Of a DNA stretch of 64,000 bases, positions 3,030 to 64,000 are shown piece after piece; position 1 is the stretch's first letter; every line of letters starts with the position of its first letter. This DNA is from Marsupella aquatica (Eukaryota > Plantae > Marchantiophyta): assembly GCA_973895155.1 (NCBI GenBank), contig OZ316899.1:14263934-14327933 (forward strand). Direction: 5' to 3'. Position numbers and translations under genes: made by a program. The notes beneath the pieces were generated by a model, which was not told the origin of the DNA, made no database searches, and saw only the letters and a program-made list of their open reading frames with translations.

Positions 3030-3755
3030 TAGTTTATGAAAAAAACGAATGAAAGAAAGAATGAATGAAAGTTAATGAAAAAACTACACAACTCTTCAAA
3101 AGCGAGAAAGGTACAATACATTAGGCACTTTATGATTCAAAGAGAAGGGCTTGAACTTTGTGCTTTTCTAATTTTCTGCTCAAATTCGGGCTCTCTATTT
3201 AGGTGATACCTATTGATGAATAAACCATGATCAATGTAAATTTTATATCCAATGGCATATAAGGTGCACTCATCAGTAAATAGAACACTAGTTGCTTGGT
3301 TGAAGGGTCGAACCTTCTCATGCAAGTAAGGAATATGCCCCTCAAAATGATAAGTAAAATATAGGGGACCTGATAAAAACTAGGAAATGAAAAAAATTTA
3401 AGTGACTAAATTCCAAACAGTACATGACTAAAGCATGGACTAGGCCTGATTAACATAAAAATACATTTCAATTCAATGAGACAAGAAAGCCAAATAGTGT
3501 CCCTACCTATATACCCTATATATCTCTATCTCGAAACCATCAACGAGATTGATCTCAAATTTCCATCTCATCCCTTGATAAAACCTTTCATGCTTATAAT
3601 TGCTCGAGAAGCTTTTTGATGGAGGTTTTTCAATGAGCCTAGCATTTCAATGAAGTGTTTAGGGTTTAGGGTTTTCCGAATCAGTGTACCCTTATTTGAA
3701 AGCATAGTAGTGTTGAGGGTTTAGGGTTTATAGATTGATTTCAACTTTCCCACTC

Positions 3756-3757
<2 letters not shown>

Positions 3758-3804
<47 letters not shown>
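3758..3804. repeat. (CT)n microsatellite
   Basis: Perfect CT run. Confidence 0.95.
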
Positions 3805-3807
<3 letters not shown>

Positions 3808-4683
3808 GAGCCTCTCGTTGGTGGATTTAGGGTTTAGGGTAACATCAAGTCCCAAGGGTTTAGGGTTTTCATTTTCCCTGATGTTTTCATTTTTTTAGGT
3901 TTCCGATTACCATTAGCCAAGTACGGGATGAATTTTGGTCGTTTTACGACTAGTTTAGCTGGATTAGGGTTGGGTATAGCTGTTTTACCTTGTGTTACAT
4001 CAAACATGATGGGGGTCCATGAAAGAAGGAGCTTGCCATGCGGGTCCATCAAGAAATTTAGAAACTTGCCACCATCCTCATACTAAACCAATGGCCTAGT
4101 CCAATTGATGCTTATCATCATACTTGTCGTTCCGGACATCCATCCTTGCTGGACTACGGAATGTCCAACCCGCCCTACACGACTCCCACGCATAGCCCTG
4201 GTTGATGACTACTATAGTCCTGTTCGGGTTCACTACCAAGATCCATGTCCTATGGGTTTTCCGGTGACAAAATGGACCGTAAATGGCTGTGTTTCAGCTG
4301 GCTTAGACTTTGGGGCAAACCACCTGCTGTGCGCCCTCTGTTTCGTGCCACGTTTTCATTGTTGTTGCCCACCGTCCTAAACCCTAAACTGTAAACCCTA
4401 AAACCCTAAACCCTTGAATCCCCACTGTTATACCGGCGGTGTGATGGATCCTTGTAGAGCATTGACAATTGGGCATGGCCCTTCTTCGCAGCCCAAGCCT
4501 CCAGCCATTGCAGCCGAACGACCCCATGGCCTGCATCACAATTATCTGTAACGTCCTTTTGTGAAGCGTTTTCCACTTCTTCCCTACCATCTTTCATTGC
4601 ATTGGTATTTTTGCGTCAATAGTGCACAGTAGAAGATTGGTAATAACTCCCTAAACAAGACAATTAGGAATTCCTTGGAAATG

Positions 4684-8289: not shown

Positions 8290-10902
8290 AGCCACGGGAA
8301 AGTTGTGGCACTTCAGATTGGGTCACATCATGAGTGAAAAAGGTTTGGTTATTCTTCAGAAAAAATGATTATTATTTACTTTCTAATTTAAGTTAGAATT
8401 CTGTGAGCATTGTGTGCTTGGAAAGCAACACAGGAAACCCTTTGGAGTTGAAACTCACACCAGCAAGGAGGTACTTGAGTATGTACATAGTGATGTGTGG
8501 GGACCAGCCCCTACTCCCTCACATTCTGGATGAGTTTACTATGTGACGTTCATTGATGATCATTACTCAAGGTATGTGTGGATATATACTTTCTACACAA
8601 TAAGTCTAATGTTTTTGGCACTTTTAAGGAGTGGAAAGCCCAAGTTGAGAATCAGACTGGTAACAAGGTGAGATTTCTTCTATTGGATAATGGCGGTGAA
8701 TACGGTTCTGATGAATTTGGAATGTATTGTAAGGAGCAGGGGATTACACACCATCTCACAACAAGTTATACTCCTCAACAGAATCATGGTGTTTTTTAGA
8801 GGCTCAACCAAATACTATTGGAGCGCTCAAGGAGTATGTTGAGCCAATCACTTACCACATGAATTCTGGGCAGAAGTTGTCAATACTGCAGCTTATTTGG
8901 TAAATTTCTCTCCATCCAGTGCAATTGGATTCAAGACGCCATTTGAAATGAGGTACAAGCATCATGCGGATTATTCACATCTGAAGGTTTTTGGATGTGA
9001 TGCTTATGTGCTTACACCTACCCAGCTTCAGTCTAAGTTTGAGTCCAAGTCAAGGAAGTGCATTTTTTCTTGGATATCAGAAAGGCGTAAAACTTAATGT
9101 TATATAGGTTATGAGATCCAGTAACCTCTAACTTAATTAGTTGTCAGTAGAGATCTTGGTAGAGATGTTTACTTTAATGAATCCAGATCATCAAAAGGAG
9201 GGGGAGAGTTATCAGGGCTCCCATACTGACAAGGGAAAATCTCCTATCCCGGACCAGGTTGGGGGGGGGGGTGATAAGTCATGATGATGTTCATGATAGG
9301 AGAGAAAGAGATGCTCCAAGTATGGAGCTAGTTCCTATGATGGAACAAGAGCCGGAGCATGCAGATTGATGTTGGTGTACCTCAAATTCAGCCAGCAACA
9401 GCAGAACATCAGGCGGCCTAAATCATCTATTAGAAGAACTTCCAATCGTTCTACTAACTAGAGCTCCTACCAGGTATGGACAATGGGAAAATTCATCTAA
9501 ACTAGCTAGATGTTGACATTGCGCCTGACGATGATCATATGGCTTCTGATCTTGGAAGAAGGAGAGTCTTTTTTGTATCATGAGGCAAGTGCTCCAAAGC
9601 TTGGGGGTTTCACTCCCACAAAAATGACATATCACATGCTACGAAGGATAGGGTCATTTTCTTGGTTCTAAGGAAAGACTTAAGAATTTTTGCAGAATAA
9701 CAATAGGGTATTTTTAATTCAATTTTGAGACTTACAAGAACCCGGGATAAGAACATTAGGGTCTTTTTAATCCAAATTTTAGAATATTCTTATAGGGGTT
9801 AGAAAATAAAAACATTTCTTGCAGTTTAGGGGGTCAAAACATCGCAGGTGATGGGGAGGTCCCCATATAGTGAGACCCCCGAGCTTCAAAGCAGAAGCAA
9901 GAGTGGACTGCAGCAATGCAACTGGAGATGCAGTCACTGAAGGACAACAAAACTTGAGGGTTGGTCAAGCTTCTTGAAGGTCAGCAAGTGGTGGACAGCA
10001 AGTGGATTTACAAGTTGAAGGATCAGTCCACGGGAGGTGGGACCAAAGGTGTACAAGGCTAGGTTGGTAGCCAAGGGATCGATTCACACAGGAGAAAGGT
10101 GTGGATTATAATGAGGTCTTCTCACCAGTTGCTAAGTACTTTACAATACAACTATTGTGTGTACTTGTTGTTTTATTTGGTCTGCTACTAGAGCAAATGG
10201 ATGTTGTCATAGCTTTCCTCTATTGCACCTTCAGTTGGAAGAGGTGATCTTCAAGGCAGTGGAATAAGCGGTTTGAAGATTGGATCCGTGCATAGGGTTT
10301 TCATAGGAGTGTGTTGGATCCTTGTGTGTATCTTAAACCGGTGAAGAATGTTGTCTTTGGTTTCATCAATGTTTTAGTACTTTATGTCCAGGATGACATG
10401 CTTATTGCGGCCAAGGATAGATCTGAGATTGTTAAGCTCAAGGCTCTGCTCAGTGCAGAGTTTAAGACGAAGGACTTAGGGCCAGCTAAGAGGATTTTGG
10501 GTATGGAGATCATTAGGGACATACGTGGAGGCTGGTAAGCTATGGTTGACGCAGAGCAATTATGCAAAGAAGATAATTGCAGGGTTCAACATGGGGATAG
10601 CAAGCCAGTAAGTACCTCGTTGGCTCCACACTTAAAGTTGTCAAAGGTTCCTTATGACAAGGCAGTGGGGAGTCTCATGTATTTGATGACTTGCACTAGA
10701 CCTCATCTTGCCATGGCTATGGGAAAGGTGAGCAGGTACATTATTGTTTAATTCAGGGAAGGTACACTGTGAAGCTGCAGTGAAGTACTTGAAGGGAACT
10801 GTGGATCATGGCCTTTTGTTTGATGCACATGCAGCTGATAATATGAGATCATTGATGGGATATGTAGATGTTGACCATGCATAGTATTTGGGTTGGATGA
10901 GG
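8290..10902 (+). mobile_element. Ty1/copia element A (Tork/Tnt1-like), degenerate pol, 5' part
   Basis: LWHFRLGH, CEHCVLGKQHR, VHSDVWGP, DNGGEY, YTPQQN, YKARLVAKG, VGSLMYLMTCTRP, GYVD. Many stops and frameshifts. gag and 5' LTR are absent. Continues at 48940. Confidence 0.92.
9600..9883. mobile_element. MITE, same family as 5200-5444
   Basis: Termini CTTGGGGGTTTCACT / AGTGAGACCCCCGAG. 8-bp TSD CTCCAAAG (9592-9599) / CTTCAAAG (9884-9891). Subterminal sequence is shared with the first copy. Confidence 0.8.
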
Positions 10903-11953: not shown

Positions 11954-14715
11954 TGTTGTAACTCATACTTGAGTTAAGTCTACCTTTGGGATAACTACCT
12001 ATGTAACTACCCTAACTACTTAGGCTGTAGCCACATGTACATATTCTACCAAGAGTAAAGATGGAACCAACTCTTTGTCTCATTTCTCCCACAACACGTT
12101 ATCAGCACGAGCCTAAGACTGGCTGAATTTTTAGGCCATGACTGATTCAACCTAAGACAAAGAAAGGAGGGAGAGCCCTGAAGACGTGATTTGAATGTGC
12201 CAAAGTTTTTTTAGTTTTTTTCTGCGAGAACTGCTTGAAGCGCTGCAGCTCGCTTTGCACTCTGAATTGAGGCGGAATGTGGACGAAGATGGCATTTGAT
12301 GTTAGCTTGAATGCGGCCAATTGTGTGAAGGGAAAGTGGAATGTATTGTGAGCAAATGGCGTCCGCATCGTTTGTTGTTGGCTTGGGCTATGCACGTTGG
12401 GATCCCGCTCGTCCTAAGTTTCATGGTTGCTATTGGATGTCTTCTTCTCATTTTTAACAAATTTTTTGAGCAATGGATTCCCTCGATCTTGGTGTCTCTG
12501 TCAACTTTAAGTGCAGAATTGCGATGATGCCTCATCGATATTTCAGTTTTGAAGCGACCTATTGCCTCGGAAGTTATCAAATTCCTAGGTTAATTCTGCA
12601 CAGTGGCAAGGATTACGAAGATATCATGGTCCCTGCGGAATTCCTGTTGTGTCTCTTCATTCCTGCCATGCAATGAGGACTGCGGGAAAGGCAATGCTAT
12701 CCCCGCTTAGGGTCTTAGTTCCCAAAGTCACACAGTGATTCTTTCATTGTTATCCGCGAATGAATTTTCATCGTAGTCCTGCTTTGCATTCTGAACTGGC
12801 CTGCGCCACATTAGTTCACACATGCGTCAATAGTCCTGGTCCAGTCCGTTTCACTACGTTCTCTTACTCTTTCTCCACCGGTACTACCAATCTGTTTGTG
12901 AGTTCCTGGAGTTGATGAAGTTAATTGGATTGATTTCTCATTCTTCTTACCGAAAACTGTGACCAAGAAAACTATGCAAGCACATTGAATTGAGAGCGAA
13001 GCCACTGGAAACTCCTACAATTGTCCGGAGGTCTGCTACGTTGAAAGATAGCAATGCAAGGAATGCGGTGAATTGTGTCATGCAACTACATTACGGTAAG
13101 CCGCGGATAAAGGCCTCGGCTGCTCAGGAGATGTCGCCCGAGTACGAGGAAAACAAAGTGGAGAAGAGAAGAGGGGACTCGGACACTCTGTCGCGCCGCG
13201 GAAAGTTCTCTCCCTTAGGCATTTTTTGTGCCTTCGATTTCTTCTTCCTCGTTATCAAAGGCAAACACAAGGATGAGGAAAGTAAGGAGGATAGCGATGA
13301 CCAATGGGAGTCCCACAGTTACGGCACCTATAGCACAGAAGGACACAGAATGCCAGTTTTGGTAAACAACAGTTCTCGTGAGATTGGCAGTATGCATGGA
13401 TAAGATGGAACAATCCACGACCAGGGGTAGGGGCATTGGTGTTATGAGCTTACGAGTTGACCATTGGGAGCACGAACCAAGAGAAGCTTGGAGAAAAGAG
13501 GATAAGAGCACGAAGGGAACGCGCGCAGCAAAGAACAAATCTCGCAACAAAAATGCTGAAACGTCAAGAAAACGTCGAGAACATACCGCTAAGTGCAAAC
13601 CCTCCTTAATTGCAAAACCCATCAAATAGATTTGCGTATACAAAGAACAATGTGCACTGAACCAGGGAAACACACATACTAAGAACGGGGACGAAATGGC
13701 ATTAAAATGAAAGATATCTATTGGAAAGATTACCATATAAGAATTGCCATTCACAAATTCAGGGGGAGAATTGTTTTTCCCAACGTGCCTACTGCATTTA
13801 AAAGCTGCCTACGGCACTTAAAAGTTCAGCTCCGTGCCTACTACACATGGAAGCCAATGAGTGCGTACTGCACATGGAAGCCAATGAGTGCGTACTGCAC
13901 ATGGAAGTAAATGACAAATTGAGGGGGAGACCTCAAGTAAGACTTGACATCAAGCAATGTAACCCATGGGATGTGCCTATTGCACAAGTGCCTTTCGCAC
14001 CAATGAATACCTAAAAATGGAACTTTATTCCATGCATATGGCAAATCATGAAATCTAAGGAATTTTTATAAATGATTGAACATGATGTTAACACAATCAC
14101 TTACCAATACTTGATGAGGTATACTGGATATTAAAGTACCATATGATAATATGAGGTACAGTACCAGGTCATAAGGTACCATAAGGTGAGACATGGCATG
14201 GTAAGGCACCATAAGAGATGGTGCGCCATACCCCAATATGATAACCCTATGTTATGGATATGGTACGTGATATGGTTCAAATAGGTTATGCCCACACCAA
14301 ATCTAGGATTGGACACCCAATCCAATTCCAAAGCCATGGATTACACCATATCATCTTCATTTTGTACTAATACTTTGCTTTGTCATGGCATGTAATCTGT
14401 GACCATCAAGGAGTCTCCATTTCCCGATTGGAAGGAGACACGAGAAACAATCAACCAAGGAGGATCTTCAACAAGCCTATAGTGCTGACAAGCACCTTAA
14501 GAGACTTTGTAGAAATTACACATACACTATATGCTTAAACCCAATTATGTTACACCCATGGGGATGGTAATACTCTTTCCTCCCACAAAGAAAGTAGGGG
14601 AGGTTTTAATGAGGTTACATCCCCCACTTACACTTTACCATACAACATGAATTATAAGACATCTATTAGGAGAAGCTTGACATTCATTTATAGTAGACTT
14701 GAGATGACTTGAGAT
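11954..14715 (+). mobile_element. Non-autonomous Bianca-type copia derivative: 5' LTR, PBS, non-coding interior, no 3' LTR
   Basis: LTR TGTTG..CAACA at 11954-12096. PBS CGTTATCAGCAC at 12097 is identical to copias B and C. Internal AGGGGGAG motifs near 13760 and 13922. Shared 3' hairpin at 14560-14624. No gag/pol motifs. Confidence 0.8.
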
Positions 14716-14982: not shown

Positions 14983-17900
14983 TGTTAGAATATATTTAAC
15001 CCTTAGCCCATATGATACAAAGAGGTATGCAATACCTAGATATAAAGAGACACAAGACTAGGAAAGGGTAGTTACAACTACCCCAATGTACAACATATAA
15101 TAAGCCACATTGGCTTAAGGGAATAATCAATCATCTTTGTTGGTGTATATACATTTCATAACTTAACACGTTATCAGCACATGATTTTGCTCCTCCAACA
15201 ACTCTCGAGCTACTCATAGGCCTCTTGTGAATTTCTTTTTTTCTGTGAACGAAGCATCGAACGAAATTCCCCAAGACACATTTTTTCTTTTCTTTCGCCA
15301 AGTACACCACAAAAATTTTCATCGACTATGACTACATTGGAGAAGCTCCAATTCCCATTGCTCACAACAGATGGCGACAATTATTTATCTTGGGCACAGA
15401 ATACAGAAATTATTCTCAACATGAAAGGCCTCGGCGACATTATCTTAGCAGATATCAATGGCACATTACAACAAAAGGCTCAGGCACTATATATCATTCG
15501 CCATCACCTCGCTGCCGAACTACAACTTGAATACCTTACAGAGTTTAATCCTCGAGTCCTATGGGACGCTCTCAAATTGAGATTCGACCATCTGCGTCTA
15601 ATTTCCCTACCAGCTGCACGAAATGAATGGATTCATTTACGAGTTCTAGACTACCCTACAATTGCGAAATTCAATAGCGCCTTATTTCGGATAACTGCTC
15701 AACTAGCAGCCTGCGGCGAACCAATCGATGAAGCAGCAAAGATCGAAAAGACTCTTTCTACATTCTCGGCAGCGAACATGCAGTTATCACAGATTTATAG
15801 ACAACGCCATTTCACCCAATTCTCAGATTTGATTGCAGTCATGCTCCTGGCTGAAAAGAATGACCTCCTCCTTCTGAGGAACTCTCGCGAGCGACCACCA
15901 GGCACGCTTCCTAAACCGGAAATACAATTCACGAATACCAATAGAGGTAATTCCTCTTACAATCGACCTCGTGGCCAATTTAAAAGCAATCCAAGTTGTT
16001 TTAATCAATTCCACAAGAGAACATTTTCGCACAGACAAAGGCAAAAACTTCAAGCCTCTCATGAATTCTTGGTATCGTAACCCCAACCATATGCCAAATA
16101 AACCTGCACAGAATTACCCCACAAATAATCAGCCCAAGTGTTTCCGTTGCGGTGGGATAGGGCATATCCAAAAGAATTGTAGAATTCAAGCTCACCTAGT
16201 CAAACTATACCAGGCCTCCCTCAAAACATCCAACACCTTAACAGCCGCACATCACTTGGAGATTGATGACGATCTCTCCAAATATACGCTTGCACCTCCC
16301 CCACCAGAGGTCCATATAATATCACATGGAGTAAATGACACATCTCTCGCCGGTGCTGATATTTGCATTCTTGACAGCGGCACTTCTCACTCCATCCTAA
16401 AAGACAAATGTTATTTCCAGCACATATACCCATCAAATAGACCTGTGACTACTATCACAGGTATAAACCAATTAGAGGAAGGCCATGGACCTGCCCAACT
16501 TACCCTTCCTCAAGGCACAACCATTAAAATTGCATCTGCCATATATGCCCCACTTGCGACACGAAACTTACTAAGTTTCCATGATGTCCGTCAAAACAAT
16601 CTCCACATACGCTCTGCACCCAACAACCACAGAAACTCTCTACAGATTTTTTGAGAAACTGATAATGGCCCCATCACAGTACTAGAGACATTACTACTCC
16701 ATCCCCCCGGCGTTTATGCCACTAAGATCATGTCTTACAATTCCCAACGACAACAATTATCCCCAACAGAATTATGGCATATCCGCCTAGGCCACCCAGG
16801 CCCAGGGATGTACCATAAAATTATGAAGAACACCATTGGCATACCAAAAGGAGTACACCCATCCACGAAGTTAGACACTTGCATCCCCTGTGCACAAGGC
16901 AAATTTATCACTCATCCAGCTTCCACTAAGAACACCTATCAAATCCCTGACTTCCTCTCACAGATCAATGTGGACGTCTGCGGACCTATTGATCCACCGA
17001 GTGGACCATTTAGGTTTTTCCTAGTAATGATCTGCTCCTCAACCAAATGGTCCTCTGTTTCTTTAATTTCCACCAGAAACCTTGTCTTTGCCAGACTGCT
17101 AACACAGCTTATACGTCTTCGCACTCAATTCCCTGACTCTCCTACCAAAATAATTTGAATTGATAATGCTGGCAAATTTACATCACCAGCATTCGATGAC
17201 TTCTGTCAAGTCCTGGGCATCACAATTCAATACTTAGTACCATATGTACATTTCCAGAATGGTACTGCAGAGGCATTAATAAAACGTTTACAGATGATCT
17301 CAAGACCTATGCTATTACAGACACAACTCCCACTTACAGCCTGGGGACATGCTATACTCCATGGCGCTGCACTAGTGCGATATAGACCATCGGCTTTTAA
17401 TATTTACACACCACACCAACTAGCATATGGCTCTATACCAGATATTACACACCTGAAAGTGTTTGGCTGCCTTGTTCTGGTACCCATTCTTGGCCCCAAG
17501 CACACCAAGATGGGACCACAGCGTCGACGTGGCATCTATATTGGCTACGACTCTCCCTCGATAATAAGGTATCTCGAACCCACCACTGCTGATGTGTTTC
17601 GAGCTCGATACCAGGACTGTAAATTCTATGAAGACACCTTCCCAACACTTCTAACTCCAGCACAACTCTCCAAACAGCCTGTCTCAACACACACATTAGA
17701 CTGGACAACAAAGGATCCATTCTGGAATGATCCTCGTACTCAATTGACAAACGATGAAGTGAAACGCATTCTGAACCTCCATCAAATTATGGAGAAAATA
17801 CCTGACGCATTTAATGATGCTACAAATGTAACAAAATCACATATAGATGCAGCCAATACTCCTGCGAGAATTCATATACCAGATACTCGAGCCACAGACC

Positions 17901-21935: not shown

Positions 21936-24900
21936 TGTGGTGCGTCCCATGGCTCCCTAAACCCAAGAAACCCCCCAGCTCAAGCCGATTCCCGCAGGTT
22001 TCGCGCTTGGTGAGGCCGTTTCCGCGGCTTAGCGGCATGGGACGCTGCTAACCTTCTACTACTACTATTAACATTTTACACACATATACTGGACAGATCC
22101 TTCATCGGGTCATGAGATACGTAGCCGGCCTAATCTAGGCCTTCCCTTGTCTTCCCCTCCGTCTTGTTAGGTATGTTTGGATTCCGCCGCCGGAATGATC
22201 CCCAATAGGCTTGGTTAAGCCGCTAAGACCTCTCTCAGCTCGACACATCCAACTCTCACTCCCCTGCTTACTTTCCTTCCTTCTGTTAGTTGATGTGGGC
22301 ACTCTTCACACAAGTTAATGCGACACACAAATAGCAAAATGACTCCTTCTGACTGAGTCATACCATGCACTTGCCATACAAACAGTACATCTCATACACA
22401 AGCTCTGCGAACTAAGCCGTGAGGCCAACTCTATTCAGCTCTTAGGCATGAGGAAACATGAATATACACAAGGGTCACTGTATGACTAACCGAGAGCTTC
22501 CCTTACTACTTGATCCCAGCCCGGCTGGTGCAAACTAAAAACTTGCTAAAGAAGAGGCCCTGAGCTCCCCGCTGCCCAGGTACTTATCCTGGTAGTGGAT
22601 CCGCCTAATTCTTTGCAGCGTAAGCCTAATCTATCCTACCTGTAATCTACCTAACTGTACAGCGAGGCAGGAGCACAAGTGTTGCTCCTGCCAGTGGAAC
22701 CGCAATCCCACTAAGCTAAGTGTCAGGGCCGCTCCTGGTCCTGATCCTAATCCTAAACTTGGAGATCAGCGCCCGCCCTGCCCACTCACGCCTCCTCCCT
22801 CCACGTCCGCCCTTCCTAAAAGGAACGACGCCCTTGCACCGTCACGACACCGGTGGTGGATCCTCAATGGACGCCCCCAACGCTTCCTCCTCAGCCATTG
22901 TCGTAGGTTCGTTCTCTGACAGATTACCTGCCCTTGACTGAGTCAACTCTCCATCGGCCTGACTGGGTCTACCATCGGCATCGGCGTCGGCTCAGGAATC
23001 ATTCTCGGCTACGGCCTCAGCCTCGGCTATGGTCTCCCCGGCCTGCTCAAGAGGCGGATCTGGGATACCGGCCTCATTACTGAGTAGTTCGGCTTGGGCC
23101 GCACCATCCCCACCTTTGATGATAGCGGGATCTATTGCCGTGTTCATGCCGGAGGTTGGTGCTGGGTCTACCTCCTTGGTCACGGCCTGTGGAGTCGGAT
23201 TACTCCTTGACCCTGAAGGTTTCCGCTTCTTCTTCTTTTCTGGTTCGGCAGCTGGTCCCTTCCCCTTCCCACTTACTTCCGGCACTGGTGCAGGTGGCGC
23301 GGCTTGTTCTTCGGCCAGTACCACTCCTGGTAACTTGGTTGCCCCAATTGGAGTTGGGCCTGATGAAGACAAGCACTTAAATACTGCGGCTTATTTCTTC
23401 AGCCGCTCTGTTTGGTTGTCGGCCCGCCGCTGGAGGTTCTCCATCTTCCTCGTGATTTCCTCCAACTCCTCCTGGGTCTCATCCAGGTCCTTGCACGCCT
23501 CCTTTAGTTCCTTCTGGGCTTCCTCCCGTTCCCTGTGGGCTTCCTCCAGTTCTTTCTTCAAGGTAGCCCTCTCCTCCCGGGTTGCTCTTAGCTCCTTGTC
23601 GAGCTCTACAATGATGATAGACTCCATCTGGTTCATCTTGGCGTAAGTCTGATCGAGCATCTCGTCCTTCTCCCGTAGGTCGGCCTTGAAGCTGGCCGTC
23701 AGGGACGCAAGCTCCTGCTGCAGCGCCATAATCCCTTGATAGGATTTCCCTAACTCGGCCTCCTTCTGCTCAAGGGCTCCGCAAATTTTCTTGAGCTCCC
23801 CCTTCAACGCCCATTCCTTTCTTTGGGTCTCCGCCATGGCCCGGTTGTTGGATGTTATGTGGGCCTCCTCTGCATTCCTCAGCTCCTTCTTCCATTTCTC
23901 CCTGTCCTTGATTGCGTCGGCCAATTCTCCTTGGGTCCGCGTCAGTAGATTCTCGATCATCCGATTATCAGATTGTGCGGTATCCAACTGGCCCTGCATG
24001 ATATTTAGCTCATGCCGCTTAATCCGCAGCTCATCTTGGGCTTTCTTGGCCACCCTCAGGTCCTTGATTTCGGCTTCCCTTTCCCTAAGCCGACGGATGA
24101 CCTCGTCCTTCTTGCTTCTTTCCAAGGCCACCGCTTCTTCTAATTGGCGCTTCTCCAACATCTCCCTCTGGAAAAAGGGTCCCTGCTCCAACTCCTCCCC
24201 AAATATGTTGAGCGCCAGTTCTCCACACATCTCCCCGTACTCCATGGCTCTGTCCTTAGCATAGGTGGAGGAAGTAGAAGTCATCGGCATCATCCACCGC
24301 GGCCTCTGCTCCCAAGCCGTCTTGCGGATCTCTTCAATCGTGGCTAGAGGTTTGCTTCCTTTTTTGGCTAGCCGCTTGATGTCCTTCGGCCAATCTCCTC
24401 CTGGAAAATCCTTTTCTCTAGCCAAGGCTGCCTCCTCTTCCTGCCTGATTCGCTCCTGAAATTCCTGCGCCGTCTATTTTATGCCGTCAAAGCTCGGGGG
24501 AGCAACATCTGGTGGGGGAGACTCAGGGCTACTCTGCTGGTTGGGGTCCCCTCGTACTACCCTTGGAAGTGTGGGGATAAACCGGCCATAGGTCCTTACT
24601 CCTGGAACGTGATGGTCCGACCCATAGCCGGAGTTATCATGGCTGCAGTCCTCCACTGCCTCCTCTACTTCTTGGACTTCCGGCTTCTCCCTCTCCTCTT
24701 CGTCCGTAGGAGCTTCAGGCAATTCTGCCTCAGATTCAGAGCTTGAGACTCCCACGTACATTCGAACACCCGGCTTGGATTCTGGCCTGATTCTCTCCTT
24801 GTCTCCAGTAAAGGGGTTTTCCCTTGTAAGCCGGTGTAGGCCTACCTCTACAGCAGTGTCCTGCATTGTTGCCGTTGCCGTTGTCGTTGCCGATGCCGAT

Positions 24901-53100: not shown

Positions 53101-56006
53101 TAATTGGGGCTAGTGACATCAAAATCTCCAACATTGATATCCCTAATTGTACCTCACACCACTACAATGTCATCTACAATCTAGGTATTTGCAACAATAA
53201 TTTGAAGAATAATCTAGTATCATGGAAACGTAAATTGAAGTTGCTATTGGATTAAGAAGGTTGCGCATTATTTTGCATATAAAGTCATGATTAATTTTAA
53301 GATTCTTGAAAATTCTAGTTCTTGGTCTAAACCCTAAATCCAGCCACGCTCGTCCATTACCGTCCAACAATACACTCCCATTGTTGACATAAGTGAATAC
53401 ATTTGATACTTGTTCTTAATTTCCAGTTCATCCTATTGTGACCGTGCAAACCCTTTTCGATGACAGGCCAGATTAATGTCACACCTTATCTGCGTTATTA
53501 AATTAGTTACCCTAATAATGTTGCCCTTAATCGCCCTTAATTAATTCAAAACTAGCAACAATACTATTACTTGCAATGTAAAACAACATTCAACATAACC
53601 ACACGGCAATGCAAGAAACACACATTCAAACCTCCTGGATATGAAAAGTCGTTCAAGCTTGCCAGTTCTTCACCAACTCGAAGCTTCCATCCTGGTTTTT
53701 GTTGTCTTCTTTTGTTTCTCATGCATCCACATGAGAAACACCAACTCTGAATTACTTTGGCACTGAAGATGGTGAAACTGATAATACTCGCATGGTTTTA
53801 TCTTTGTATTTACAAATCCATCAGGGTTTCACATAAAGAAGTTAAATTTAACAAAGTTACCAGTGTGGCAATATACGAAAACCATCATAGCATGTTTGTA
53901 TATACTAAAACAACCCAGGCGGACTCAGACTGGTGTGCCGACTCGGATAATTATTATCCCGGGGTTTAGGGTACGAATTGCACGGAACCCCATGAATTTA
54001 TGATTTAGGGTGGGAAATGGCAGTAGATGATGCACGGAATAGAGATTGTGGAGATGCACAAAACCCCGTTGGCGGTTGGCCCGTTGAACCACGGAGAGTA
54101 TGTACTCTGTAGTGTTCACGGAGAGTATGTACTCTATAGAGTCATAGAGTGGAGAAGGAGGCCAGAGTGCAACTGGAGGAGTAAGTATTATTATTGACCA
54201 TTGGCTGAACTATTGTACTACCGTAGAACTTTAAGTTTCTCCGCATACTATTCTGCGCATACTATTTGGGTACCGTCTACAAACACTCGTTAGTTCTTGT
54301 TAGGTATAGAATTATACAGTATACTATCATCAATGGCTCCCTCTATCTTTATTCTCTCCAACTCACTTTCAATGTGTTTGTTTTTTCTTCTTTTTTCATC
54401 TTTCTCTTTTTTAATTTCTGTTTTCCTATGGGTGAGAGATGGGTCACCTGTGACACTCTTTCCAAGGTGCTTAACTAGTATGTGGGTCCAAACTCAATTC
54501 TTTCACGTAAATTATATAGCCAAATTACATTCAGAGTAGTGTTGTAAATTTGTATTAAATTTATGTGCATTAAATTAAAATATATAAGAATGACATCAAA
54601 GCTCATCTACAATAACAAGAGTATGCCATAAGAAAAATGATGGCTTGGATTGAGCCATTAGTTATAACTATCTGTAATTTGATCTTGGGCAACTTAGTTT
54701 GAAGATTCAGTTTGTTAATAAATACTAGTAAAAGAAATTTCTCATCATTATCCTAATATCATGGCAAGTGGATTCCAAGCTCTTTTCTTTGCATACTTTC
54801 CTCACAAAAATACAAGGCCTATACTCTGTCCCCCCAACCAGGTTTTAGTTTTTGCATAGGCAAGGGTAGTTTGGGTACATGATACCTTCAAGAATGTAAT
54901 CCATGATGACATCCTATTATGTGCTAATTGTTATTAAGAACGAAAGGCAAGATCGAGGCTAATCAATGCCATTAGCCTTTATTAACCCAGTACGTGACTG
55001 CCTGCTGCCCAGTATTTCTAACGTTACATGGTTTACATGGTTTTAATTAATTGTTTACATGGTTGTGAATTATTACCATGTCAGATATAAAATTGGAAGA
55101 TCAAAGAGGACAATAAAGTTGTGTGAAAGCTTCAAGTTGTACCAGATGTGCGTTCCGAACTTGGTGTCACTCTCTAATTAGTCAATTTGGCCCCGGCGCT
55201 GAGAGAACCACAAAACAAGTTGTTAGAGGAAGAGTTTACACATGTTTTTGATGTAGAGAGATATTAGATGAATTCTTTATCATGATGTATCACTCACTTC
55301 AAGATAACTCCTGGTTTTTCATCAATACTTGAAAAATGTCATTAGTCATATCTGAAACATGACTTTCATCCGCGTAATCGAGCGTAGAATATTTCAACAG
55401 TTTACTTTAACACTTCATCTACTACTACTACCCTTTGGTCATGGGCCTGGTATTTGAGAGTTTGCAAAAGGGAATTTCTTGCAACAGTAGTAGCATTGTT
55501 GTTGTTGTTCACAATACTACCCCTACGGTAGCGATATAATAATGTTGTATGCACTAACAAAGGTGGGGGCCGGTTTAGGGTCATTATTATGATGACACTC
55601 ACCAGTACAGCCGTCGGCCCATTGAATTGCGATGGACCGTCTTTCCAAATAAGGGCAAATGAGTCTGACAAGGGTAATTAACGATAGGTTGCATTGATTA
55701 GTCCTGCCGCCAGCTGCCAGGCACAGTTATGTAATGTCAGGCTCAAGCTGCATTTGCCATCACCAGGTCCGAGGCGTGGTTGTGAAGCGTCTCACTTGGC
55801 CGGGCAGGACATGTTAACTAAAATAAACCAATGAGCGTCGATCAAAAGCTACCTCGCGGGCCTATTATTGTATTGAGTTAGTAAAGCCTGTACACCATGA
55901 GGGCACAAGTGAAAAAATACAGAGGAATTGGGGGGAGAGATGACCAACAAAATTAGGGGTAACAAATGTTTTTGGGTTTTTTGGGTATAGTAGTGGGGAT
56001 GGTTCA

Positions 56007-56147
56007 GTCTGCCATAGCTCCCGGATTACAAGCTAGTCGGGGGTACGAAGGGAATTATGGTTGCGTCTGCCGTAGCTCTCGGATGACAAGCTAGTCGGGG
56101 TGTAAAGGGAATGGTTGGCGTCTGCCATTGCTCTCGGATGACAAGCT
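56007..56147 (+). repeat. Three tandem copies (55-58 bp period) of GTCTGCCRTWGCTCYCGGATKACAAGCT upstream of the ORF
   Basis: Read directly. Confidence 0.85.
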
Positions 56148-56279
56148 GGCGCCCCCCTCAGTCTCATCCGAGAAAAAGTGGTTGTGGGTGCAATTATATC
56201 ATCATGCTTGATTGGAGCTGAATGATCTTTTTGGCCACATATAACTACCCAGCCCGTCCATTCGCTAGCAGACATTACG

Positions 56280-59200
56280 ATGACGTTCCGGTGCGATGGG
56301 TGTCCTGGAATGGAGTTTGTTATTGTTTCTCAAAGAGCCGCTCATAGGAGAGTAGTTCATCAGTTGTTTTGCAGTGTCGTTGAGGCCGATGGCACGAGAT
56401 CTTTAGTCTACATATCCGTAGCTCATGATTGGCCGTGCCCTCACCGTTCTTGCTTGTCTCGCTTACGTCGACCGGAGTGCTTGCAGAACCATTATGCCAG
56501 AGAACACATCCAAGGGACAACCCATAGTCGTGTATCGGTCCCAACAGGCGATTTGGGTGATTCGGTTCCCAGTAATGAAAGTCCTCGGGTGGCGACAATC
56601 TCAGAATTTGTGGACACCCCAGATGTGTTAAGTCGAGAAAATTTGTCTATGGTGAAGTACAAGGGCATGGCATTGCTCTTGTGTGTTACCTGAAATGTTA
56701 TCCTGGATGGTTCCAGCGTGGGGACGGTTTGCAGGCATGTCTGGAAGGATTTTGCGCCCCTCTATAGGAATGGGGGAAGAAGCTTATGGAGCCAACAAGA
56801 TGAGCGATAGCTATCGACGGCCATCGCGAGGATGCAATTAACCCCCCCCAATGCAGTGTGGGATCATTGTATTCAAGGATTAGTCTCCCCAGTCCCCGAT
56901 ATCGTTGTCCGTAGAGGCTACTCGTGCCCCTTTTGCACTACCTACCACAGCGCAAGTAAGAAGACTATGCGTAATCACACGATACGAGTGCATCCCAAAG
57001 TTACCGATATGACCATGCGTTGCAGTAGTAGTGTTCAATGTCTTGTTCAAGGTGTCGGGAAGAAGTACTTTGCAGTTCAATGTCCAGCCGACCGAGCCCG
57101 AGGTAGCAACCAAAGCCTGAAGTCTGCCCTGTCCAAGGCAATTCTTGAGATGGAGCGGATGCTCCCGCACAGAACGATCCTCCCCCTCGAGAGCTATCCA
57201 CGTGGCTCGAACCACTGGATGGGTGAAGGTTGCGGCATGACTCATACTAGAGAATTCAATGTACAACGATATCAGTGGTCCCATGCGTTTGGCTTGCCGG
57301 GAAGGTTCCCCATATGCACGGGTCCCGGATGTTGTGCTCTCGTATGCCACGCTTGTGCAAAAAGTCTTGGTCGAGGCAGATTTCAGAGTGAGGACCTTGG
57401 TTGTGAGTCCTGACTCTCCACAAGGATTCACCGAGTTCCTCCAGGAGTCCACGATAGAGAAGTATTGCTCGGTCATGACAAATTTCCTGTTCACTTTATT
57501 GCTCTCTGCATGTGATCCTCCAGGCTCCCATGTGCTCCTCGTTGTGAAGGCTCCCGACCGCTTGAAGGTCCTTCTCCAAGCCCTAAAGATCCAGTTGGAG
57601 TCCCTTCCAGAGGGTCCCAAAGACCCGGACCACTTTGACTACACTGTCCTACACGACCTGTTGCTCGGTTTGTGGACCCCCCCACATCCGACAAAGGTGG
57701 TAGCCCAAAAATTGACAGACAATTATTTTTTGCAGTTTTTGATCCTGTCCTTGCTCAAAGCGTGCGCGCTCTCCACTGGTTATGCATGAAAGGAATCCAC
57801 AGATGTCACCCCAATGCTGTCAATGATGAAATTCTGGTGCCGAGCGGCAATCAAAATGGAGTTATGTCGCACTCTTTGGAATCGAGCGGCAGCGGATGAC
57901 CTGGATGTCGAAGATGCGAGAGCAATTCTGGCGTACGTGGAGGATAAACCTAGGCTAATAGAGACACCATTCGGCTACATTTCTTCTTGGCAAACCCTTA
58001 TCTGCTCGCTCGTCGGCAAAAAGCCGAAAAGACCGGATCTCATTGCATCAAAGCCCGGTTACACAGAATGCAAAGTGAACGGTTACCCGACCACACTGGA
58101 CGGCTATAGAGAAATGGTGATGGCGGTGATTAGTGAATGCACCGTCCTCATGCGGGAACAAGTTCTGTTGGGTCTGGACATGGATTGGTTGGAGCGACTG
58201 TTGGTACCCGGGGGTAGCGTAATTGTGGACGAGCTCAACAAAGATAGGAACGAATACTCGTTCCTCACTGAAGAAAGAAACCCGTTCCATGAGCACTGGC
58301 ACAATTTGCACCAGCATCTGTTCTCCGATGACATGAGATCATCACATTTTGTCCATCGCTACAACGAGAATGGCATCCAGATGTGGAACAAGAAGGCCTT
58401 ACACGAATGGTTGGCCGTCGCCAATAGATTGAACGACCGGCTCACTTGGCTGCTGCATTTTACATCGGGTCAGCCAGCTAGGGCAGCGGAGTACGGCAGT
58501 TTCTTGATCCGCAACACGACAACCAACCAATAGACGTTCCTGTGGGCAGAAGGGACCTTGGTGATACACCAAACATATAACAAAATGTGTGGTCGGAGAC
58601 GCTCGAAGCACATCGTTTGGTTCTTACCCCTATGTTTGAGGCTAGCCTTCCTCCAGTACCTTACCGTGGTGAGGCCTGTGCAAGTGTTTGTTGCGAGTCA
58701 ATTGTGGGGTGGAGAGAAAGCAGCGGTGTACGCGGATTGTTGGTTTGTTGAAACCGGAAAAAGGCGTTCAACACGGCATGTGAGTGCAGGTGTGGAGAGG
58801 GAGTTCCTGAAACGATTTATGGCCCTGTTTGGGATTAGGCCTCATTGGCACATTATAACGTTCTTTTCCGAGCCCATTTGGTTCCATCTGCAGATATCAC
58901 TGGCTAATGAGCGGCTGGATGCATTTGCAGGCCATTCGGTGTCCACCGCTGGCCATAACTATGCACAGGAATAGCCAAGATTTAAGAGTTGTTGATTGAC
59001 ATGAGTGGAGGAACTTTAGGTTTGTCGCAAAGAAGCTTCCTTGTTTACTGCGGCTGCCCACAGACCTTAGGAGACACCCGAAGGCCGAGGCCGAGCCTGA
59101 GCCTGAGCCTGAGCTGCAGCCAGGCACAGAAGTGGTCCGGCCTCACCCAGGTGTGGAAGTTGAGTTCGCTCCGTCCTCAAAGCAAATCCGGATCCTGCAC

Positions 59201-61070
59201 AGATGTGATGATGGATCAAACACCAATCACGGCAATGAACTAGAGGGCCTAGACCCTGCTGTGATGTATGAAGCATGGATTGCACTTTTCAGCCTTGGTC
59301 ACAGGGATTGGAAGACGCGTGAGCAGGCAATTGCAGTCGCCACGGCGGTGGACAACATGCAGAATTTTGTAGCCATCCTACCCACGGGTTCCGGGAAATC
59401 GGCTGTTTTCATGGCAGCCGCTCGGAGTAGCAGAAAGACGGTGGTTGTCGTCGTTCCTCTGTATGTGTTGATCCACACTCAGCTGGCGGAGTGCAAGGCC
59501 CCAGGTTTTGATTGTCCGGAGTTCAGGGTGAGCTGTATCCCTGTGGCAAAGGCGTCTCCGCTTGTGTTTGTCCCTGTCAAGATTGCCATCCAAGAGAGTT
59601 TCCAAAGTTGGGCCAGACAACTCATTTGCGCCAGCAAATTGCATTCAATCATCATAGACGAAGTGCATCAGGTGTTGTGTCCCTACCATCAAAATCCATG
59701 GCACAGCTTCTCTGGCTTTCCCGACTTCATTGTCAGCTGATTGGATTGACGGCCTCTCTACCGCCCCGCAAGGAAGCGGCATTATGGTGGAAGTTGGGAA
59801 GTCCATGGAAGGTGATTCGGTCCTGTACATCACGACCCAACCTCAAGTACATAGTTGTGGACGATGAGGCCCGACTGGATTTGAAAATCGTGGAACTTCT
59901 ACATGATTGGATGGCCGTCGCCGGCACAGAGGACAGAGCCCTGGTATACACTATGACGAAGAATGAAGCTGTGGATTTGGATCAAACTCTGCAACAACAT
60001 CATGTCCAAAGCTGCTTCTTAACCTCCGACATTGTGAAGGCAGATAGACTTAGCAAGCTACAAAGTTGGGAGGCGGGCACGCCTAAAGTCATGGTGGCAA
60101 CCTCAGTGATCTCCTACGGATATAACTATCCTAGCATTTGCTTGGTCATGCATCGGGGAGGCTTTTATGGGTTGGAAGAGTACCACCAAGAGTCGGGCAG
60201 ATGTGGACGAGACGGCCGGCCCGGAGTGTGCGTGGTGGTTTTGCACAAGGACTATCGTGCCTGGGCGTTGTCCGCGCCATCCGTGCAAATCGAAGGAGTC
60301 AACTAGGAGAGCATGAAGATTGCGCACCAATGGATTGCGAACAGTACCATTTGTCGGCGATACAACCTTCACCTTGAGATGGACGGGAAGGCACAGGTTT
60401 GTGCCCTGCTCCCTGGCGGCTTGGCATGCGACATGTGCCTGGAAGCCACGGCTACCACGCCAAGCCAAAGTGGAGGCAATCGCCCACTCACACACAAGGC
60501 CAGACGGAGCAGCTGTTCAGGATGTATATATTCCGAGACTGGAAAGCGTAAGGATAGAGGCAAACATGCGCAATGATATCATCGATCTCAATTATGTTTG
60601 TCGGCATGGGGGTGATGGGAGGCGATGTCTACTGTGTTGGGAGGACTTGCATAGCCCTGCAAATCATGGAAATAAGGGAGTGTGGCGTAATGAGAGGGTT
60701 ATGCCTGCGGTGTCTGTCCAATCGCCATCGGGTTTCCAATTGTAATGTGAAGAGTCAAGAACGTCATAATAATGCTTGCTTCAAGTGCTTCTTTCCGTTT
60801 GATCAAATCGGCCAAACCCAGGTGCACAAGTGGGAATCCGAGAGCAGCACCTGCAACGATCTGTCCGGAGAGAGGATACAAATTCTAATCTGGCATGCAT
60901 ATAGGAATGACAACTCGTGCAGATGACTCAGGCAGCTGTTTCTTGACATGCCATTGGATGACCGTAAATTTGAGCCTTGGCTACTATCAAAGGCCACGGA
61001 GAGAATGCTGAACAATTTTGTGCGTGTGGCGGCCGCTGTGATGAGGATGAAACCATCATTGGAAGAATGA
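56280..61070 (+). pseudogene. C2H2 / DUF3505-like + tyrosine-recombinase-like + RecQ-family helicase + Cys-rich tail (telomere-linked-helicase-like)
   Basis: CDGC..H..H; GYSCPFC..MRNH..H..VQCL..YFAV; HFTSGQPARAAE; YNK; FLP..YL..VRP; AGHS..HNYA; LPTGSGKS; IIIDEVH; GLTASLPP; TSRPNL; VMVATS; QESGRCGRDG; CRR..C..CDMC. Intronless, many stops and frameshifts. Confidence 0.85.
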
Positions 61071-61397
61071 AGTGAGCTTGCTCTATCCTTGTTGCAGACC
61101 AGAGACTATGTCAAATGCAAAAGAAGCTCAGTTTAGTGCAGCAGGCCTGTGTGAGACGTCTTCCCACCCTAGGAAAGCAATAGGGTGTGCTAGCTGACCA
61201 AGGTGATACACTGACCCGGCTCAAAATAGGAAAATTGTGGAAATCGATGAACCAACCTAATGCATGGCAAAGATGCCCCCACACGACTGTCGTGCAGGGT
61301 TGAGGGTGGGTAAAGGGTTTAGTGGGCGGGGTAGTCATAACCCATGCTAAACCCACGACCGTTTGTGCTTCTCACCCGTCTAAAACTTTGCCTCCCT

Positions 61398-64000
61398 ACT
61401 ACTACTGCTACTACTACTAAGTCTACTACTACTGACTAGGGCTACTGACTGAAACTTATGTTTTTAGTAATACAGTTTGGCACCCGATATTTCACTTGCG
61501 TGGGCTGCCCGGGTCAGGTGGTCGGATTTGCTCTCCTCATTTCGTTCCTCATCACGAGCTTTCACAGAAATACAAACACTTGCAAAATTCTCTTCATTCT
61601 AATTACAAGGTTGGAAAACAAGCTGCGTAACCAAATGTTGAACTATCTGATTATCACATTGTGTGTGAACCTTGAAAATAGCAACTAATGGTAGAAAAGC
61701 CTATAGGTACCAATCTCCTTGCGTCCCGGAAACAATTGTAACTACAAACAAAATGAGGCATAATTAAAATGGGAGGATTTGATAGTCCAACTGATTTGAT
61801 GGTCCGGCTTGGCATGTGAGCAAGGAATTGAAACATTGGACCCCCTAAGGTGGCACTGAAACACACATTGATAAACCCAGGCCGGAGTCCTTTTAGGTGC
61901 AAGGTAAAGTTCAGACCCCCTGTTTTTGGGGATTCGATTTTGGGTACCGGTGTTCAATATCGGGCGGGCGGGGACCAGAGGCATTCGGGTGACCCAAAGG
62001 AGTCCGAGAACGTGTAGGGGTTTGAGATGCCCTACACTAATACCTGCGGCCTGAGCTAAGCCAGCGATGTAATCCCAACCTAATCCTAGCCAGTGTCGCC
62101 CGGACGCTGGTGCTTCCATCTTCCGTGAATCCCGCCGCGTAATGCTTGGCATGCTTGCTAGTCCCACTCCAAACTAGATCCGGACCGCTAGTCCTGATGA
62201 CCCCGCAGACGATCATTGTCCTCCCATAGGACCCGGATCTGGTGGTTCAAGGAGTCAAACTCCCGCTTCATGATGTCCACCTCCTCCGCCGCATCCTCAA
62301 ACTGAGGCATCCTCCAAGTCATGGATGTTACTTGTCAGCATGTCTGCTAGCTGGCCTTGCTCGCTGACCTCTCTCGTAAGGCAATCAACCTCGGGCTTGA
62401 GAGCGTCGACCCCTGTCCTGGCTTCTTGCTGGATCATGCCCGTCTACCATGTGTGCTCCCAACCCTCTAGGTTGTAGATCTGCTTCCGAAGATGAGCTTT
62501 CTCCTCATCCTTGTCCGTGGTCGTGATGAATGAGCAAGCCACATACTCATTTATTTTGTTGATGGCCTCTTTTACATGTGCTTTGATCGCCTCGATAGTC
62601 TCAGTGTAGCGTCGGTCTTCTGTATCCTCCCACTGATATTAGCAAGCCTGGTACTCGGCTTTGGTGGCAGTGAAGATGTCCCTCAAGGATACCATCCTTT
62701 TTCATTGTCAAGAGCAAACCCATCTCGAGGCAAACATTCCTGGCAATGTTTCCCAGCAAGTCGATGAGAAACTTTCCGGGAATTGCCTGTTCCTCCTGAC
62801 GGTGAACTTGGCCCTGCAAATCTTGCCTTTGTCACCCGGATAGGCTTGCCAAGGTCTGGTCAACTATGGTGGTGAGAAACCGGCCTGCTCCGGGGTCATG
62901 GCAACGGGGGAAGAGTGCTTGGCTTCAAGGGCCGGCTCTGGATCCATGGTTGTTACATCCCAAATCCCGAATGCTCGTACAACCGCCGCATTGGTGGGGG
63001 GATGACCTCATTCTGTTGAATTTCCCCGCTCTCAACATCATCGTTGGTTGGCTGAACCCCACCCTCTGAACCAGTCGTCTCTGACTCCGCCTGATTCTGA
63101 ATAGTCTTCTTGCTCTCTTCTTGGACTTTTCCCTTCTCTCCATCATCCTCGTTTCCTGACTCATATACATAAATTGTTTCATGGGACTTTTTCTCTCCGG
63201 AGGCGGGCTCGTCATCCTCCTCCTCATGATCATTGACAATCCTAATCATCTCCTTTCCACCAGCTTCTTTCTTCTTTGGGTGCATTTAGTCATGGATTAC
63301 TGGATGCCCTTGAATCCATTCCTCCACCTTTGTCTCTCATTGAAAATTTTCATGAACACAACATTTGGAGAAATAGTCATCTTTCTCCTCTAGTCATCGT
63401 CTGGGATCTTCATCCGCATTATGTGATCCACCTCTCGTGTTCGAGAGATAAAATATTCCGACTGCTTCATGACATAGGAGACACGTCCAAGACCCAAAAT
63501 AATTTCATCTGCCTTAAAGACCTGATCAGGTGACAGCCATCTATTCGTCAAAGGATCAAAGAAACCGCAGTAGACAACATTTGTGTCCTTATTTGTAATG
63601 TTCCAGACAATGTGCTGAGCAGAACCCATGAAGTGGAGCAACCAACCATCTGCTTGAAATTCCTTTGGGGATGCAAATCTTGTACAGTCCCCGATAGTGC
63701 CAAAACTCACAAAGTTTCTTCATCCATTCTCTGTTTGAACTCCCCTGATAATCAAACAATAGTTACCTTCAACAGACCACGAATTCATAGTCGACAAAAT
63801 ATTCTCAAGTTTGGCCACCATTGGAATTTCAATCCGAAGCCTGTCAAAATGAAAATAAACGTATCGAAATCCTAGAGGACAAAGAGAAATATGTCAAAAC
63901 ATGTGCACGAGACTCACCGTAGAAAATAAACGGGGCCGACAAATCGTATTCATTATTAACAAAATGATGTCAAAACATCCTTTACAAAATGGCCTTTAGC
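61398..64000 (-). mobile_element. Degenerate coding LTR-like element (acidic / coiled-coil ORF remnants); probable host of the helicase element, left remnant about 55138-55430
   Basis: Minus-strand broken ORFs 63390-63710 and 62953-63285, followed by coiled-coil-like remnants. Has a CTA tract downstream of the ORF, as in element D (22056-22067). Confidence 0.45.

Follow-up and report, generated by a model that had tools for sequence, protein, structure and literature searches.

A decayed copy of a proposed unit of about 5.97 kb, coding for a TLH-type (telomere-linked helicase) protein, is found at 55431-61395 on the + strand of a 64-kb window of the liverwort Marsupella aquatica (Marchantiophyta; contig OZ316899.1, 14,263,934-14,327,933). 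The window is the whole stretch of DNA analysed, and all positions given below are numbered within it. The explanation which we favour, with a modest degree of confidence, is that this unit entered a (CTA)n microsatellite by a Crypton-like exchange catalysed by a recombinase. The evidence to be considered includes the position of the unit between two (CTA)n arrays, the domains of the encoded protein, the predicted fold of its middle domain and the presence of the family in many copies.

Proposed boundaries of the unit

The unit corresponds to a GC-rich block (GC 0.505, compared to 0.362 in the left flank) which starts directly after the (CTA)4 microsatellite remnant at 55419-55430 and stops directly before a degenerate (CTA)14 array at 61396-61438 on the same strand. 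With a slash marking the junction, the left edge reads ...CTACTAC/CCTTTGG... and the right edge ...GCCTCC/CTACTAC.... In the whole window (CTA)n occurs at only four loci, two of which adjoin the GC-rich block. The unit is compact, being composed of an open reading frame (ORF) and flanks of 0.85 kb and 0.33 kb. The longer of these is the 5' leader (55431-56279), which is non-coding and holds 2.6 units of a 58-bp tandem repeat at 55999-56147.

For CryptonF-1_cRei of Chlamydomonas, which ends in CACCG and targets CAYCG, the short terminal motif matches the target (PMC9977147). By analogy, (CTA)n on both sides of the unit would be the expected trace of a Crypton-like exchange at a short core common to element and target. 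No terminal inverted repeats of the unit were found, and a test for terminal overlap, as expected of circular or tandem forms, was negative on the six family contigs L001-L006. When the unit and its ends were compared with the 64-kb window by BLAST, no further fragment was detected there; Rfam gave no match for 52-64 kb of the window, and megablast of the unit against plasmids gave no match in a collection unsuited to the question. The window contains no telomere array, the only telomere-like match being one of 21 nt at 4382-4402, and around the ORF of this copy telomere-like hexamers show no enrichment, in distinction to the L004/L005 contig pair described below.

Reading frame and domains of the encoded protein

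The chain of ORF pieces at 56280-61070 on the + strand forms a single intronless, decayed frame of about 1590 codons. Its pieces are colinear with residues 107-1650 of an intact relative of 1654 amino acids (P0002), with 40-46% identity and no intron-like gaps. Decay is evident from about eight stops, in-frame ones lying at 56691, 56808, 57787, 58531, 58972, 60304 and 60924, and from no fewer than four shifts of frame, close to 57052-57188, 58965-58970, 59695 and 60438-60681. In the read contigs described below every other contig has a C at 56693 and 56808, where the window copy has the stop-making base; the window copy alone has the stops at 56691-56693 and 56808-56810.

Three C2H2-type zinc fingers are encoded at 56292-56360 (Cx2Cx13Hx4H), 56436-56507 (Cx4Cx12Hx4H) and 56925-56993 (Cx2Cx13Hx4H), the third of which is a sub-threshold match to the Pfam family OrsD (20.6 bits against a cut-off of 26.6). 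The middle domain follows at 57790-58971; the module comprises about 400 amino acids, and its N-terminal edge probably lies some 150 bp upstream of 57790. It carries the motifs GQPARAAE (58468-58491), YNK (58576-58584), H-W-H (58843-58851) and AGHS-x7-Y (58927-58962). The RecQ-type superfamily 2 (SF2) helicase core at 59318-60216, split by a frame shift at about 59695, is recognised by Pfam as DEAD (1.2e-11) and Helicase_C (2.4e-14) and shows the Walker A motif (59381-59401), a DEVH box (59657-59668) and motif VI (60187-60216). A RecQ zinc-binding module, C-x16-C-x9-C-x2-C, is present at 60352-60438, and the family profile matches BLM and RECQ5 at E 6e-63 with this module included. The Cys/His-rich C-terminal tail at 60573-61067 is conserved in the family.

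Apart from DEAD, Helicase_C and the weak OrsD/C2H2 signal, Pfam recognised nothing in the ORF pieces; neither the ORF pieces nor six relatives of full length gave a Pfam match to a HUH Rep, DDE or XPG domain. The first-pass annotation, made from the letters of the sequence, had reported a decayed intronless ORF with zinc fingers, the middle motifs and a RecQ core with zinc module, all of which are present, and had noted the lack of DDE and HUH domains, to which that of XPG can now be added.

Relationship to the telomere-linked helicase family

Catalogues of TLH genes at the ends of fungal chromosomes go back to 1998, and the name "TLH domain" has been in use since 2009 for their family-specific domain of unknown function. 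In fungal TLH proteins two C2H2 motifs at the N-terminus are joined by a TLH domain of about 250 amino acids, to which no function is assigned, and by a RecQ core, and the genes are multi-copy and subtelomeric (10.1101/2024.02.27.582403; 10.1101/2022.03.07.483234). The fingers of the window protein fit the published TLH spacings Cx2-3Cx8-14Hx3-5H and Cx2-5Cx11-16Hx4-5H (10.1101/2024.02.27.582403). The RecQ-type core expected of the family is present, as judged from DEAD, Helicase_C and the family profile, and the window family is multi-copy with frequent pseudogenes. The subtelomeric position typical of TLH genes is not seen for the window copy within the 64 kb.

The middle domain is homologous, with E values down to 1e-59, to the domain found in the same position in fungal proteins combining C2H2 fingers and RecQ. 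The architecture and the motifs recur in fungal proteins of Ceratobasidium, Rhizoctonia, Serendipita and Suillus, of Aspergillus, Penicillium and Alternaria, and of Botrytis cinerea, whose proteins are multi-copy and were met as clusters of many member sequences. Going by published descriptions, through which alone the proteins named TLH were compared, the order of parts is the same in Magnaporthe oryzae TLH1, S. pombe Tlh1/Tlh2, Botrytis BcTLH and the TLH proteins of Ustilago maydis, Metarhizium, Fusarium and Monosiga brevicollis, and the genes share with the window family that they are intronless, multi-copy and often pseudogenised. The window copy differs from them in its liverwort-type genome and in having no adjoining telomere. 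Architecture and homology together strongly suggest that the window protein belongs to the TLH family. That its domain order is the one of fungal telomere-linked helicases and not of plant RecQ genes had already been recognised in the first-pass annotation; the same annotation had proposed a new class of transposon, and here the protein itself is not of a new class, since its two C2H2 motifs, TLH domain and RecQ core are the known TLH architecture.

The TLH domain has no assigned function in the literature searched, while the domain of the window family models as a tyrosine recombinase. Our literature search found no paper pairing TLH with tyrosine recombinases, and the word "helicase" has 0 occurrences in the 2011 Crypton survey. 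A profile search from the family alignment (A3) returned mainly generic helicases and a search of the ESM Atlas unnamed helicase clusters only.

Conserved residues of the middle domain

A HMMER scan with the 239 amino acid piece encoded at 57814-58533 found 166 representatives of the family, many of them of 1,400-1,700 amino acids and with the order OrsD/C2H2, middle domain, DEAD, Helicase_C. Among 168 related proteins gathered at that stage, 59 carry G-x-P-x-R-x-x-E and G-H-x8-Y about 160 residues apart, which shows that the motifs of the middle domain are not due to chance. The near-invariant set of the family consists of G-Q-P-x-R-x-x-E, Y-x-K-T about 34 residues further on, (W/Y/F)-R-H and A-G-H-x8-Y, with some 160-170 residues between the first Arg and the Tyr. 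Each residue of the set R, K, R, H and Y is either invariant or shows 90% conservation or more, and the last two have a H-x8-Y layout. The active site of tyrosine recombinases is R-K-HxxR-H/W-Y, and a spacing of nine residues from His to Tyr is also that of XerD, Cre and lambda Int.

In the window copy the codon of the first Arg (R of GQPAR-x-x-E) is at 58480-58482, that of the catalytic-type Lys (Y-N-K), placed just past a beta-hairpin in the structure models, at 58582-58584, and the His (58933-58935) and the nucleophile-type Tyr (58960-58962) are nine residues apart. At the position of the second Arg (Arg II) the window copy has TGG, coding for Trp, at 58846-58848; its H-W-H aligns with the (F/Y)-R-H of P0002, of the Calypogeia fissa copies, of P0005 and of P0014, and all aligned relatives have R-H here. 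A second Arg, twelve residues past H-W-H, is Trp as well. Since Arg II is replaced, the active site of the window copy is, as read from its codons, broken and presumably dead.

Some members of the family vary in this region. In the 2687 amino acid protein P0007 residues 42-93 of the query piece are matched fourteen times, a short segment of the pre-catalytic region being tandemly repeated. Fungal proteins with two recombinase-like modules are P0170 of Aspergillus thermomutatus and P0317/P0324 of Botrytis cinerea. P0170 has box I (the motif of the first Arg) at 528 and 1202; the search outputs list no Pfam helicase match for it, and the motif scan gave neither Walker A nor DExH; in P0317 W-R-H and G-H-x8-Y are at 318/374 and 1232/1278.

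Predicted fold of the middle domain

The fold was examined on AlphaFold models of two homologues, P0037 and P0014, and not on the broken window copy. The model of P0037 (375 amino acids, pLDDT 88.9) was matched in Foldseek by tyrosine recombinases throughout the first 34 rows (E 0.05-0.9), with XerA at the head. In VIA-align the top 25 rows all belong to the tyrosine recombinase/topoisomerase IB superfamily, including XerH (Z 10.2, root-mean-square deviation 3.0 over 151 amino acids), an archaeal Xer (10.1), XerA (9.9), Cre (9.5), XerD (9.4) and topoisomerase IB (8.0). For P0014 (527 amino acids, pLDDT 87.4), whose box-I region G-Q-P-x-R-x-x-E-Y-x-S-F resembles that of the window, the top 16 rows of VIA-align are all of the same superfamily, with an archaeal Xer as best match (Z 12.6, 172 amino acids), and Foldseek lists Cre and XerH first, with probability 0.9. 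Across the two models Cre reaches Z 9.6. This model aligns over 228-238 residues with Cre 57-320, XerH 98-340 and IntI 38-298, and the match therefore covers the N-terminal core-binding domain too.

From these models the TLH-type middle module appears to be a two-domain enzyme resembling tyrosine recombinases, with core-binding and catalytic domains. The proposal of the first-pass annotation that the middle domain has a tyrosine recombinase fold agrees with both models, for which only this superfamily appears at the top of Foldseek and VIA-align; its suggestion that the W of H-W-H is a decayed Arg is borne out by the alignment with the near-invariant (F/Y/W)-R-H of the relatives. In the models both domains of the module fold as in Xer, Cre, lambda Int and the type IB topoisomerases (Z up to 12.6), and the R...K...R...H-x8-Y layout and the nine-residue spacing of His and Tyr are further points of agreement. 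It is unlike Xer, Cre and Int in that sequence similarity is below detection, in its large inserts and in being embedded in a multidomain protein of 1,600 amino acids.

Copies, relatives and host

Contigs of four public sequencing runs, from two organisms and two studies, were laid out on 54700-60699. Each run gave 348-487 contigs with 80-100% identity, ranging from below 90% to above 99%, and transitions are dominant among the differences. The TLH-type family is a multi-copy, high-copy repeat in both organisms, and the outcome which the first-pass annotation had named as speaking against its proposal, homologues in single copy, is not what the runs contain. Contigs of other copies cover 55470-56364 in both organisms, and the 5' leader therefore belongs to the repeated unit.

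Within the leader the number of 58-bp repeats at 55999-56147 varies among copies, and in some copies 55725-56353 is wholly missing. The AT-rich left flank at 54700-55430 is a high-copy repeat in both organisms, with indel joints at 54905-55048, 54917-55306 and 55189-55292.

The closest named relatives are gene models of the liverwort Calypogeia fissa. Two loci of this species, L002 and L006, carry near-full-length frames with 2 and 5 stops, respectively; they show no DNA similarity to each other, and each resembles the window only at 68-70% over short stretches. A quick LG+G4 tree was rooted on ordinary RecQ proteins, the broken ORF of the window being read through with an X at each break. In this tree the window copy groups with P0169 of C. 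fissa and with P0002 (SH-aLRT 98), and P0005, P0003 of C. fissa and P0154 join this group next (SH-aLRT 98, 99 and 100). The basidiomycete clades and a distinct ascomycete clade lie outside this deep plant-type clade. Its separate standing speaks for long residence, and against both contamination and a recent transfer. The first-pass annotation had considered an exchange with fungi; the tree, as inferred from these protein sequences, gives no sign of a recent one.

A further family member lies on the contig pair L004/L005 (GC 66%), embedded in degenerate TTTAGGG-type repeats. It would represent a telomere-linked copy, from an organism whose telomeres are of the plant or green-alga type. The high-copy presence in a liverwort, and probably in green algae, extends the host range of TLH genes past fungi and a choanoflagellate.

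On L004 the intact member of 1672 amino acids is flanked, at 1-340 and 5360-5740, by many degenerate TTTAGGG/TTTTAGGG-like motifs, and both L004 and L005 begin in a (CATTGCATTC)3 repeat. At the C. fissa locus L006 there are (AG)n arrays on both sides of the frame, 0.37 kb upstream and 1.6 kb downstream, with features at 8588-8608, 13705-13735, 15232-15366 and 15609-15630; two CCCTAAA follow about 100 bp past the stop and three GGGTTTA further on. L006 may be a second case of flanks made of a simple sequence repeat (SSR) with the same motif on both sides, or a chance arrangement.

Proposed mechanism

In the mechanism which we propose an intact copy would encode in one ORF the C2H2 fingers, the two-domain recombinase-like module, the RecQ helicase with its zinc module and the Cys-rich tail. 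The N-terminal fingers would bind the target or the ends of the element, and so direct the protein to DNA. The 5.97-kb unit would enter a pre-existing (CTA)n microsatellite through an exchange between the repeat and a short core at the joined element ends (about ...CTCC-CTAC-CCTT...), as in Cryptons. Cleavage and rejoining of the DNA by the recombinase module would proceed via a 3'-phosphotyrosine, and the RecQ part, a 3'-5' helicase, would start from the nick to unwind or branch-migrate the DNA 3'-linked to the recombinase. The copy found in the window would have been inactivated later by transitions, including Arg II to Trp and several of the stops, and by frame shifts.

The closest parallel for the integration step is that of the Cryptons, which likewise have an enzyme of tyrosine recombinase fold and lack terminal inverted repeats and a classical target-site duplication. 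For Cryptons integration has been proposed to use a short core common to terminus and target (PMC9977147), and in the window a CTA(C)-type core is present at both junctions of the one copy. The window enzyme differs from that of Cryptons in its fusion to a RecQ helicase and C2H2 fingers, and the family in the absence of the first His of H-x-x-R and of a GCR1_C domain. The kinship to Cryptons advanced in the first-pass annotation has no counterpart at the sequence level, where no similarity to Crypton/DUF3435 or Phage_integrase models was detectable.

A parallel for the combination of enzymes are the Helitrons and Helentrons (HUH Rep plus Pif1), in which one large ORF also fuses a tyrosyl-linking DNA-cleaving enzyme with a helicase, and the analogy suggests a similar nick-and-unwind logic. 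The HUH enzyme of Helitrons forms a 5'-phosphotyrosine and Pif1 moves 5'-3', whereas the recombinase-like module would form a 3'-phosphotyrosine and RecQ would move 3'-5', so that the RecQ-recombinase pair would be the polarity mirror of the Rep-Pif1 pair.

A wider reading, which we hold only tentatively and consider possible rather than probable, is that the TLH genes overall, in fungi, choanoflagellates, green algae and bryophytes, encode the transposases of a superfamily of eukaryotic DNA transposons that has not been described. These would combine zinc fingers, tyrosine recombinase and RecQ in one ORF and insert site-specifically into simple tandem repeats, usually telomere repeats, the liverwort lineage having been retargeted to (CTA)n. 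Telomere repeats as the usual target would explain the "telomere-linked" position. A new class of transposon in this sense is a live but unproven hypothesis. If a working recombinase is indeed fused to RecQ, this would offer a testable mechanism for the multiplication of TLH genes and their location in tandem repeats, and would add a helicase-bearing branch to the tyrosine-recombinase transposons. What the present locus contributes is an interstitial, decayed copy which splits a microsatellite, a kind of arrangement by which insertion can be told apart from passive duplication of subtelomeric DNA.

Evidence to the contrary and alternative explanations

A number of observations weigh against insertion by a recombinase. 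Ten family members searched against Pfam at E<=1 gave no integrase, DUF3435 or other match for the middle domain, a hidden Markov model (HMM) of the domain searched against PDB sequences gave only a spurious match to lamin, and hhalign of the domain profile with XerD, Cre and lambda Int gave a probability of 0.1, which is not significant. In the non-significant alignment with XerD the R and K of the family are placed on R148 and K172. The assignment as recombinase rests on predicted structures of homologues with 21-31% identity. The canonical first His of H-x-x-R is not conserved in the family, which makes a topoisomerase-IB-like chemistry possible in place of a recombinase chemistry. As to the boundaries, the evidence is the (CTA)n pair and the GC shift at one copy; no second copy with the same ends, empty site or circular junction was seen, the left flank is itself repeated and read depth leaves the boundary unmarked, and SSRs are common in the window (about one per kb at a TRF score of 30).

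A less likely explanation, which nevertheless deserves attention, is that the family is the same but not self-mobile. Its members would be subtelomeric genes, either of the host or commensal, which ectopic recombination, break-induced replication or segmental duplication has spread. The window copy would then be a decayed fragment that has changed its place, and the flanking (CTA)n would be there by chance or would only have promoted microhomology-mediated capture. This is in line with the published TLH genes, which are found in duplicated blocks of subtelomeres and for which a role in telomere maintenance is discussed (10.1101/2024.02.27.582403; 10.1101/2022.03.07.483234), and with the window copy, which has shown no shared ends, target-site duplication or terminal inverted repeats and whose left flank is repeated too. 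The Y' elements of S. cerevisiae (Y'-Help1) are comparable as subtelomeric repeated units which encode a helicase and are thought to be spread by recombination; their helicase is not of the RecQ type, and no recombinase module is known from it. It is harder to reconcile passive spread with a window that has no telomere array, with a compact block whose sharp composition edges fall exactly at two same-strand (CTA)n arrays, or with hundreds of contigs of graded identity in two organisms, and a conserved active site of recombinase type is difficult to explain in a passively duplicated helicase.

It is improbable, in our view, that the middle module is a nicking-closing enzyme similar to topoisomerase IB or to telomere resolvases, which would work with RecQ on telomeric or repetitive DNA, for example to relax structures there or to resolve them, and would not be a site-specific recombinase or transposase. 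Type IB topoisomerases lack the first His of H-x-x-R, and the conserved R-K-R-H-Y of the family is their pentad; topoisomerase IB structures reach Z 8.0-9.1 and the protelomerase TelA 7.2 across the two models, and the family is telomere-linked in fungi. Xer and Cre, however, outscore topoisomerase IB in both models, the alignments of 228-238 residues with Cre, XerH and IntI place the N-terminal domain on their core-binding domain, and the multi-copy, insertion-like genomics is better suited to a recombinase than to such an enzyme.

Fungal contaminant DNA in the assembly, or a very recent transfer from fungus to plant, is a very improbable origin. It could be suspected from the named relatives, which are mostly fungal, and from the sub-threshold OrsD match, this Pfam family being named after a fungal protein. 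The copy sits, however, among Copia and CACTA elements, a setting which is for this reason plant-like, and it is decayed and CpG-depleted to a degree resembling its flanks. Many diverged copies are present in the runs of two organisms, the three C. fissa lineages have no mutual DNA similarity, and the C. fissa copies form with the window copy a well-supported clade outside those of ascomycetes and basidiomycetes.

Membership in a known group of helicase-bearing transposons, AcademH or Helitron, would account for an intronless, multi-copy gene with SF2 helicase and is scarcely credible, given that no XPG/DDE or HUH Rep domain is present, that the helicase is of RecQ and not Pif1 type and that the other enzyme module has a tyrosine recombinase fold.

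Other (CTA)n loci in the window

Of the (CTA)n loci not adjoining the unit, the one at 22053-22070, within the stretch 21955-22070, is about 100 bp past a CCCTAAACC motif and edges a GC-rich block at 22-26 kb (GC 0.54) with long unannotated ORFs. BLAST gave no similarity to the ends of the helicase element here. A (CTA)13 array at 985-1023 is followed within about 220 bp by CCCTAAACCCTAAACCC and then by a cluster of plant-type telomere heptamers at 1246-4649. Half of the TTTAGGG/CCCTAAA heptamers of the window (15 of 30, with about 8 expected for the whole window) are found between 1.2 and 4.7 kb, and the cluster looks like an interstitial telomere-like tract.

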